A stretch of 64,000 nt of DNA. Origin: Botryllus schlosseri. Its lineage: Eukaryota. The stretch is taken from NCBI GenBank assembly GCA_051294905.1, contig CM119376.1, positions 18,972,001 through 19,036,000 on the forward strand, written 5' to 3'. Of this stretch, positions 32,901 through 35,900 are shown piece by piece. Made by a program: the position numbers and the translations under genes. Position 1 is the stretch's first letter. Each line of letters opens with the position of its first letter. The notes under the pieces are model-generated. The model was not told where the DNA came from. It worked only from the letters and a program-made list of their open reading frames with translations, and searched no databases.

Positions 32901-35900
32901 ACTTGACAGGCGTTGCGTGCTGCCAGTACTCACAGAGTATAGATGGAGTGGATAAAAGAGTGTCTTCGGTTCGGAGTCAGTGATAGAGCCCCGGGACGAG
33001 CATTCAGAAGACGGGCACGACTGCTCGTCGAGCTCGACCAGACCGGTCGATTTCCTTCGGTTTTGCTGTTGCAAATGTTTTCGTCGCTTTTTTTTCATGG
33101 CGAACAGTTCAAAGTGAACGGTATCTTTCAAATGCTTATCGGGTTCTTGGACGATTCCGTTACCGGACACTAGAGCATTGTACACGGATTTCAAGAGTCG
33201 GCTCCGAGACCTATCCTTTTCGGAAGAGAAAGCAGAACGTAGAAGACGATCAAGATCGGCAGGGAAAGTTAGAGAAGAGGAACAGTCCATGACTGCATTT
33301 CGACTTCCTATTTCGTAACGATGCCTAGAGCCAAACACAGCTATATTGCATCTGCACGTGCAACATCAGAAACCAAGCACATGTATTTGATTATAATACA
33401 AATTACTCCAAGTTGACTTCTTATTGATGATACTCATGAACAGAAATATCAAGCAATCCTATTATTGAGCTATCAAATGAATTGAATGATTTAAGGACAA
33501 GCGGAGTAATTGAACGTAGTATTTCAATGGACTTATCATTACAGTCAGTCCTTTTGTAAAAAGGAAGCAGCCGAGATTAAAACATCTGACACCATTTCAC
33601 AACATCTTCGAATATTTCATTGCAATTACAGTTTGTAGGTGAGAGGGGGTGGAGGATCACAGTGCAATAATGGAAGGTGCCGACTCCTTTCCGTCGTTAC
33701 TTGCCTGTTTGAATTCTGGCTGCTGCGAGTATACAAGAAATCTCGTCGAATGCACCAAACAAGTTGAGACATAAGGAACAATAACAAGCATGAGAAAAAT
33801 GATTAGTGCAATCACACTAGAATTACGATATCTACTTCACAATTATTGTTATTATCAGAACACGAATCACACAGGAATTATTCGACATCATTGCACACAG
33901 CATACTCTAGCTAGGCGACATCCATCACACGTTTAAATCTACCAGGAACTAGGACCAACACTGCGACATTAGAGAAATTTGAGTGTAAACAGCATAGTTC
34001 TTAGACAGCGTTTAACTAACTTTGGGCAGCACACTTTTGAAACATACGCCTAGCGAATGGGTTGTTGAATGTGCAACTCTCATAAATGGACTATATAAAT
34101 ATTTATTTTGATATAAAAATATCATGGCTCACTGCTTAAGCAACCTAAAATTTAACCAACTGTACTGGTTCGCTGACAGTGAAACAGGACTGTAATTTGT
34201 CAGGATTTACAACAAGAGCAATGAAAATGGCCGAAACTACCAGTAACATCCATAGGTAAAAAACCCAGTGACTAAAATTGATATTTTCTGCAAAATAAGG
34301 CACCTTATAACCTAGTTTTATCAGATTCAAATCATCAGACAAAATATCTGCATAGGCTAATCAACAACAAACCTTAACCCTAAGCCTACAATAAGATGTT
34401 TTGAATTGTTTTTGTTGCAAATGAAGAGAAAAGGCGCATACAACGTATGCAATAAAATTGTCCGAATTCAAATTTCTACTGTCGATAATACAGGCACTTC
34501 ACCTGAAAGACGACAGGAGAATAAACGTGATATACTACAAGTGAACAACATGAAGTGAACATGATAGAGATCACATAGTTGCATGTCTTGCTAGCATTGT
34601 TTGTTTATATTCAACATTGTCAAAGGCATTACCATGTCAGCTGAAGTGTTCATCAATTCAACGTCCCGCCTACATTGTGTATCATAGGTCAATGACACTG
34701 CTGAAGCTCCAGTATAGCAGTTCTAGCAGTTCATGGCAGGCACCAACTACATTTTATCTGGGATTGTGATTGAGCATTTGAGCCTTCCATAAAATGTTGA
34801 AATGAAGAACACTACCAGGGACATTACAACGCCACAATGACGCACAAAGATATACTGAATGATTTGATGGACCATCGAACTAATGTGCAACATTCTACCT
34901 ACTGTTCTGTGCAGGTGATGAAAGCTAAGTGAATTACACATACAGACAAGACTCAATACGTCAAAAAGCATAGGCTCACCGTTCCACCATGGGAAACCTT
35001 GCCGCTCTTGGGCGAGGCAGCAACATGGGCAAGGTACTGAATAACCTTCTTGGTATTTTCAGTCTTTCCGGCACCAGACTCGCCACTGAAAATTAGCATT
35101 ACGTGTTACGCGAGGGTTAATCGAGTTCGCAATCAAGACGATCACAGAACAAAGGGAATGTGTTTTCATTCATAGTATATAGGCTGCCATTGTCTTGAGT
35201 GGCATCAAGAAATTAAAACCAACTGATGATTACGAAATACGCGACGCCGTATATCTTGATAAGCCGGCGTTCGACCTATCAGGTGCTACGTGTTACGTAG
35301 TCTCAGCGAGCGCACGTAAATTGATAGCATTTTCCAAAAGTTTAGTGTTCACACCTGCTATACCAACTTGGCAAGGTTACCGAGTATTATTATTGGCGTG
35401 CATAACCGATGAAACCTATTGGCAGACAGTATCATCAGATATCTTGCGAACGCGATTCCTAGTACGCACAAACAAACGCGCCGATTCAAATTAGTTATAC
35501 CAACAAATGTATTGGAAAAAATCGCCGCACGGCGAGGCCGCTAACACTCTTTCCATATATGGGAGGCCTAGCCTCCATATAAGGATAATAAGAGAGAGAG
35601 GTAGAATGAGCGAGCGCGATGACGAGATCAAAACTCCCTCTCGCACCACTCTCGTTTTCGAGAGCGAGTGAGTTCGTCGAGAGCGTCTGCCCGATAACAT
35701 TCCTTTTCGATAATTCACGCTGCCTTTTTGCCCCGCGATGTTCAAAGCCTCGCGTTTCACAAACGCGAATAGCGATACAGGCAGGAGTTGATCAGTCGCG
35801 GCGCGTTCTGCGTCACCGCTAAATCATGCCGGTGATTACAGCGAAACTCCGCAAAGGAAATAACGCAGTTACGAAGAACTACATACAACAGTCTCGGAGA

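Follow-up and report, generated by a model that had tools for sequence, protein, structure and literature searches.

The 64,000 nucleotides (nt) of Botryllus schlosseri DNA analysed here (the window; contig CM119376.1, positions 18,972,001 to 19,036,000 of GenBank assembly GCA_051294905.1) include, on the minus strand, a myosin II heavy-chain gene, and within the intron at which its loop 1 is encoded lies a stretch of 94 codons that is almost certainly a genuine alternative exon, conserved as coding sequence, whose donor is used. The best-supported account of this exon, to which we give somewhat better than even chances, is that of a usually skipped cassette giving a loop-1 insert of 90–96 amino acids (aa), for which we infer use of the acceptor at its upstream end. 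Loop 1 is the 25/50-kDa junction beside the nucleotide pocket. In myosin II, ADP release and speed are tuned by this loop, which in vertebrates is in turn modulated through very small alternative exons. A preliminary description of the window had offered two possible products of the stretch, either an insert of 94 aa in loop 1, entered through an acceptor at 33215, or a new 119-aa N-terminus starting at ATG 33290.

Host gene and coding conservation of the exon

The first exon of the gene starts at ATG 39002, encodes the SH3-like domain and was matched by Pfam to Myosin_N and Myosin_head. Among solved chains, its closest counterparts were Myosin-11, Myosin-9 and Myosin-10 (E 1e-48 to 1e-46), with striated myosins far worse at 1e-28 or beyond, which on the evidence of sequence places the gene in the non-muscle/smooth-type myosin II clade. 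Further downstream, two constitutive exons, the P-loop exon and the GELEQQ exon, bound an intron of 3.9 kb at the site where loop 1 is encoded. The 94-codon exon lies between them, within a minus-strand open reading frame (ORF) of 189 codons (33338-32769) in which a KKKRRK patch and a Ser-rich stretch are found. Protein searches with this ORF recovered short ORFs on contigs of three other species, namely P0001 on L002 and P0003 on L006 (both from Logan) and P0002 on L003 (from ENA), and these relatives, together with an RNA assembly of the species itself (X9), allowed the boundaries of the exon to be drawn as follows:

35085-34980, minus strand: P-loop exon (GESGAGKT...VSHGGT), constitutive, with a phase-0 donor gtgagc; placed by motif scan and sequence
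33288-33290, minus strand: ATG from which a 119-aa N-terminus was once proposed to begin; L002, L003 and L006 have no ATG aligned with it
33216-33255, minus strand: putative 3' splice site, a pyrimidine-rich tract and then aaaAG/G, with AG at 33217-33216 and first exon base 33215; AAAG/G after a T-rich tract is aligned in four species
33215-32934, minus strand: conserved alternative coding exon of 282 nt or 94 codons, ending ...FYPLHLYS, phase 0 at both ends; orthologous blocks in three species
32926-32933, minus strand: 5' splice site GTGAGTAC, invariant in four species; last exon base 32934, TCT/GTGAGT; joined to 31107 in X9
32825-32925, minus strand: conserved intronic block directly 3' of the donor; the L006 match spans 33227-32825, about 100 nt beyond the donor, and the alignment has motifs in common here
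31107-31014, minus strand: GELEQQ exon, constitutive, starting in phase 0; 91% identical to L006
L002:1070-1354 (95 codons), L003:98-367 (90 codons) and L006:1279-1566 (96 codons): orthologous exon blocks, aligned with the window in a four-species alignment

Insertion of the 94-codon exon keeps the frame, its length being a multiple of three and all four boundaries being phase 0. The P-loop exon itself opens mid-codon, and a splice from exon 3 straight to the 94-codon exon would break the frame. The preliminary description had a phase-0 donor at 32934 that keeps the frame into the GELEQQ exon (31107), and this was borne out by the sequence, by its invariance in four species and by a junction in X9.

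When the intron contigs of L002 and L006 were compared with the window by blastn, only islands aligned: a block around an 18-nt microexon (33811-33653, 75–79% identical), the exon itself (33227/33203 to 32921/32825, about 70%), a block around a second microexon that encodes NLSY (32594-32301), short elements at 31986-31655 and the constitutive exons. The short islands within 31655-31986 (minus strand) are 84–90% identical to L006. In the four-species alignment, similarity starts exactly at AAAG/G and the donor CT/GTGAGTAC does not vary; the exon measures 282, 285, 270 and 288 nt (94, 95, 90 and 96 codons), and all indels are multiples of three. Frameshifts or stops in the orthologous introns, which the preliminary description had named as evidence that would speak against the ORF, were looked for, and the exon frame was open in all four species; it is the only such frame and matches the flanking myosin exons, and the other five contain 2–10 stops each.

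The pattern of substitution, which the preliminary description had also put forward as informative, was that of a coding sequence. Between the window and L002, the differences at codon positions 1, 2 and 3 numbered 21, 14 and 48, with 0.16 of nonsynonymous (pN) and 0.80 of synonymous sites (pS, saturated) changed, i.e., a pN/pS of about 0.2; in the closest pair, L003 and L006, pN was 0.088, pS 0.438 and omega about 0.14. The constraint was the same in the 39 codons before the sole conserved Met (residue 40) as in the codons after it. As read from these alignments, the exon is under purifying selection as protein, and neither chance nor a role at the RNA level alone can account for the pattern.

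Several side observations belong to this comparison. At L002:1061-1069, the P0001 translation reads a TGA as sense, and its first ~40 residues are an artefact; its hydrophobic N-terminus was considered as an upstream extension of the ORF and rejected, because it stems from this read-through and the real frame stops three codons before the acceptor. The X9 allele carries three differences inside the exon (window 33098, 33137 and 32994), namely M40L, K27E (the latter also in X10) and a silent change in S74. RNA contigs in general differ from the window at 1.2–2.7% of letters, the species being very polymorphic. The last 12 nt of the exon with its donor (32934-32952) resemble the NLSY microexon with its donor (32479-32497) at 14 of 19 letters, a likeness that hints, at the level of sequence, at a shared origin through an old duplication or at a common need for an aromatic residue before GELEQQ.

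The 94-codon stretch is single-copy in the 495-Mb genome, and a search for a protein paralog of the ORF in that genome found none, the sole match (E 0.66) being taken as chance. Pfam assigned the ORF to no family, a feature search of the ESM Atlas gave no usable match, and a JGI metagenome scan with an exon profile yielded 219 pattern matches and 0 confirmed. A search with a relative's ORF from GELEQQ onward, for contig proteins with junction overhangs, had a best match 69% identical and found no close relatives in the length range. Negatives from the protein searches are weakened by clustering at 50% (in the representative library) and by length limits.

Transcripts of the loop-1 intron

The RNA data comprised the assemblies X7, X9 and X10 (k = 31 contigs), which were counted as RNA because they carry the exon–exon joints of the gene, and a raw-read run, X24, in which just eight reads fitted in part. 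Use of the donor was seen in an X9 contig of 1366 nt (mean depth 21.9) that covers 34262-32933 unbroken and then continues from 31106 downward. The preliminary description had predicted a junction 32934>31107, and this is the junction that the contig contains: the excised part has GT..AG ends, the NLSY microexon is skipped, and one letter at the cut is ambiguous. The short side of the joint measures 29 letters (30 in the main joint), just below the 31-letter rule for a bridging record; such a length is to be expected where a k = 31 contig ends at a branch. The junction was taken as real splicing. Depth in X9 drops from ~21 to 0 directly after the donor, with none in 32565-32926, and the exon boundary is therefore a sharp one.

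The main isoform proved to be slightly longer than an earlier model had it. In place of the direct join of 34980 to 31107, there is a 12-nt microexon encoding NLSY between them (at a depth of 107 in X9, with a loose end to match in X10). A further microexon is a candidate from conservation. The two are:

32497-32486, minus strand: NLSY microexon, 12 nt, ag/AATCTATCCTAC/gtaagt; its 12 letters stand in the X9 joint 34980>31107 and are identical in L006
33705-33722, minus strand: candidate microexon, 18 nt (QPEFKQ), with a GC donor and phase 0, in the 160-nt conserved block 33811-33653

The NLSY microexon sits within a conserved block of 290 nt. The block of the 18-nt candidate shows 79% identity with L002 and 75% with L006, with the exon and both its splice sites nearly invariant; no junction using it was found in X7, X9, X10 or X24. 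A coding first exon running from ATG 33791 through this microexon was considered and rejected, L002 having a 1-nt indel there. Also rejected as a splice was the loose end of an X10 contig at 33709, which looks like ribosomal RNA and was taken for an assembly chimera.

RNA from the intron as a whole reaches ~5–10% of the depth of the exons in X7, X9 and X10. A relative's RNA contig (L006, 1-4183) begins within the last part of the P-loop exon and keeps the whole orthologous intron (~3.6 kb); after the GELEQQ exon come four more exons, all joined, the four downstream introns having been removed. These observations suggest that the loop-1 intron is slowly spliced and detained, and that this behaviour is conserved across species. 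The half-spliced X9 RNA fits an intermediate of such a slow intron, in which the downstream part is taken out first and the weak AAG acceptor is used last, and it fits equally well a transcript that starts inside the intron.

Entry into the exon and its proposed retention in an RNA loop

In-frame stops stand 3 (L002), 15 (L003) and 13 (L006) codons upstream of the acceptor in the relatives, with no ATG between; in the window, 24 ATGs lie between 34262 and 33290, and the Met at residue 40 is Leu in the X9 allele. It was on these grounds that the conserved coding sequence was concluded to be reached through the AG. Both the P-loop exon and the 18-nt microexon have phase-0 ends, so that cis-splicing from either would give an in-frame insert of 90–96 residues. 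In the proposed mechanism, one or other of these phase-0 donors would be spliced to the conserved AG (33215), and the exon would be left at 32934 to the GELEQQ exon, 90–96 residues thereby being added to loop 1; it would be skipped in most transcripts, kept in a loop of 931 nt by two conserved stems, in an intron that would be spliced slowly and often retained.

The arms of the stems are:

33654-33664, minus strand: 5' arm of the outer stem (CACUGUGAUCC), 11/11 complementary to 32587-32577; in L006, 687-710 pairs with 2012-2035
32577-32587, minus strand: 3' arm of the outer stem (GGAUCACAGUG), 80 nt upstream of the NLSY microexon
33583-33602, minus strand: 5' arm of the inner stem, 18/20 complementary to 32651-32632; in L006, 747-767 pairs with 1947-1967
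32632-32651, minus strand: 3' arm of the inner stem, pairing with 33602-33583

The two stems are nested and bound a 931-nt loop that contains the whole 94-codon exon, their 5' arms following the 18-nt microexon by ~40 nt and their 3' side preceding the NLSY microexon by 80 nt; the 5' arms are also kept in L002. Duplex energy was -57 kcal/mol in the window, where mononucleotide shuffles gave -31.7 +/- 4.7, and -71 kcal/mol in L006, where they gave -33.4 +/- 4.5. Both arm pairs were compared in two species only (the window and L006), and covariation between these is minimal, the outer stem being invariant and the inner having a single change on both sides, from G-C to U.G (by eye). Inclusion is lower for exons that conserved pairings loop out (PMC8052449), and we infer from the pairings that the stems hold the exon skipped unless they are opened, which would explain its low level in whole-animal RNA. 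As in exon loop-out by long-range pairing described elsewhere (PMC8052449; in Drosophila, PMC2724269), complementary arms, here ~1 kb apart, flank an alternative exon and persist between species with introns that do not align elsewhere.

A number of points weigh against the cassette exon. Neither of the joints by which the preliminary description would have had the exon entered, 34980>33215 or 33705>33215, occurs in X7, X9 or X10, so that of its proposed 94 aa in loop 1, the exon stood (coding, conserved from AAAG/G and in frame), and the step onto the acceptor did not appear in the three RNA assemblies. The junction 32934>31107 comes from one contig in one run, and that contig is unspliced through the acceptor up to 34262, 1.05 kb upstream of the exon. 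The M40L and K27E changes of the X9 allele indicate that constraint within the species is not absolute. No full-length myosin carrying the insert was found in the searched protein collections (a weak negative, in view of the length limits and clustering), and the representative library has just two intron-contig ORFs. At 94 aa, the insert would be ~6 times the largest described for loop 1 (16 aa), and the AlphaFold2 (AF2) model of the peptide, built from four sequences, has a mean pLDDT (predicted local distance difference test) of 65, which is low confidence and too weak for a fold search.

The unspliced X9 contig and the absence of a cis junction onto 33215 are also what favours the chief alternative, in which the 94 codons are the first coding exon of a transcript starting within the intron, either from an intronic promoter or by addition of a spliced leader onto the AG at 33215; we consider this possible but rather unlikely. 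Its product would be a heavy chain without the SH3-like domain and P-loop, with the rest of the head and the rod kept, and not one with the 119-aa N-terminus. In ascidians, a short leader is added to AG acceptors by trans-splicing; a leader tip of 16 nt would be clipped by a k = 31 assembler and hence be invisible in contigs. Spliced leaders can supply near-cognate starts (PMC9851317). Depth in X9 and X10 over 33079-34262 is 2–3 times that of other parts of the intron, which would also suit an internal start, but each depth figure is averaged over a whole contig, and the species is highly polymorphic; as a poor guide, these figures were not used for placing the transcription start. On the other side, there is no conserved ATG at or near the exon start; the sole conserved Met is the residue that X9 has as Leu, and the 39 codons before it are constrained no less than those after. 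If transcription started near 34262, all 24 of the upstream ATGs would precede ATG 33290. Upstream of the acceptor, conservation is confined to the 18-nt microexon block and the stem arms, and the phase of the exon fits the upstream exons, something that a start in the intron does not require. From what is known of the myosin fold, a head that begins at loop 1 would be missing a portion of the central sheet and be unlikely to fold.

The remaining explanations fare less well. That the exon acts at the level of RNA, as a decoy, or as an intermediate in the slow splicing of a detained intron, with the half-spliced X9 RNA a dead end that is never translated, would agree with the intron kept whole in L006, with the intron depth in the three assemblies, and with the stop that the X9 contig, if it came from the normal promoter, meets soon after the P-loop exon. 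It is nonetheless improbable, as it leaves unexplained the third-position pattern, the pN/pS of ~0.2, the indels in threes and the single frame open in four species at saturated synonymous divergence. More improbable again is translation from ATG 33290 as a feature of this species alone, the 119-aa N-terminus then corresponding to the 357 nt to 32934. In this genome the frame remains open over the 51 codons before the acceptor and the X9 contig has the stretch unspliced, but the ATG and the 25 codons up to the acceptor align with nothing in the relatives, which have in-frame stops and no ATG, and the stretch is rich in pyrimidines, in the manner of a tract that precedes a 3' splice site. In addition, ATG 33298 opens a frame of nine codons 8 nt earlier and many ATGs lie further upstream. 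As a conserved protein, this second product of the preliminary description is unlikely. As for an ORF arisen by chance in the intron, one of 189 codons at 42% G+C would be expected ~0.07 times per 64-kb window (a rough estimate of our own), and the lack of a Pfam, Atlas or paralog match would be in keeping with it; the conservation pattern in four species and the RNA junction refute it, and its probability is close to nil.

The predicted peptide and its place among myosin inserts

The cassette exon, as the reading that we prefer, raises the matter of what it would add to the motor. In the AF2 model, a helix at residues 2-16 is followed by a long helix at 27-62, which is best over its basic stretch (pLDDT 83-88), and residues 63-94 are disordered; this last part carries the invariant motifs SS.CSSRGS.TD and KT.FYPLHLY. 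The insert is thus predicted to be a short helix, a long, strongly basic helix and a flexible tail rich in Ser and acidic residues that ends FYPLHLY. In our reading of the motifs, it may bear a patch resembling a nuclear localization signal and kinase-type sites. By analogy to the vertebrate inserts B1, C1 and SMB, the effect on the motor might be a change in ADP release or ATPase, or the insert might serve as a module for docking or phosphorylation.

In vertebrates, loop 1 is the site of alternative cassette exons in non-muscle myosin (NM) IIB (10 or 16 aa) and IIC (8 aa) (PMC10480317; PMC3535348), and the N30 exon of MYH10 depends on distal intronic elements (PMC3082911). The genes with loop-1 inserts (MYH10 with B1a/B1b, exons of 30 and 18 nt; MYH14 with C1; MYH11 with SMB) belong to the same clade as the gene described here, and share with it the position of the intron between the P-loop and GELE(R/Q)QLLQANP exons and the phase-0, frame-preserving character of the exons. 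Conserved regulatory islands in the intron are also common to these loci, and the 18-nt and 12-nt microexons here are of the vertebrate kind (PMC3082911, PMC10480317, PMC3535348). The 94-codon exon is of a different order: in place of inserts of 7–16 aa, there are 282 nt for 94 aa (90–96 residues over the species), with a long basic helix predicted. The preliminary description had drawn attention to this, and the comparison holds, 90–96 residues standing against 8, 10 or 16 aa in the vertebrate B1 and C1 inserts (PMC10480317). The 94-aa insert has no sequence similarity to known loop-1 inserts, its acceptor junction was not seen here, and full-text literature searches found no description of a 94-codon loop-1 exon.

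Larger inserts from alternative exons are known elsewhere in the motor domain of NM II, i.e., in loop 2, where B2 has 21 aa, C2 33 aa and A2 21 aa, and NM IIB2 and IIA2 are without actin-activated ATPase (PMC10480317, PMC3535348). These can abolish or uncouple motor activity, although they lie at the actin interface and not at the nucleotide pocket and are 3–4 times shorter than the 94-aa exon product.

Headless or truncated myosin II from intronic promoters is also known, in the myosin rod protein of Drosophila and in molluscan catchin. In both, a unique, intron-encoded N-terminal peptide is spliced to common downstream exons, as it would be for a transcript starting in the loop-1 intron, but the rod protein and catchin start in the rod without the whole head, whereas here most of the head would stay, and there is no conserved start codon.

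Whichever way the exon is entered, the gene model has to take in one more coding exon together with a 12-nt microexon. The full proposition, of a chordate non-muscle/smooth-type myosin II with a conserved, regulated loop-1 module of 90–96 residues, comprising a basic helix and a phosphorylatable tail next to the nucleotide pocket, whose exon is normally held in a conserved RNA loop, we regard as about evenly poised between true and false. If the exon instead heads a P-loop-less chain, that chain would represent a new type of filament subunit, one with a naturally dead motor. If the cassette is real, its product would far exceed in size every loop-1 insert known in a class II myosin, and would offer a natural experiment on the load that loop 1 can take while the ATPase cycle runs or stops. 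The conserved loop-out switch would be a simple one, open to mutation and test. Loop 1 would then be able to bear a whole extra module, possibly for regulation, localization or silencing of the motor.

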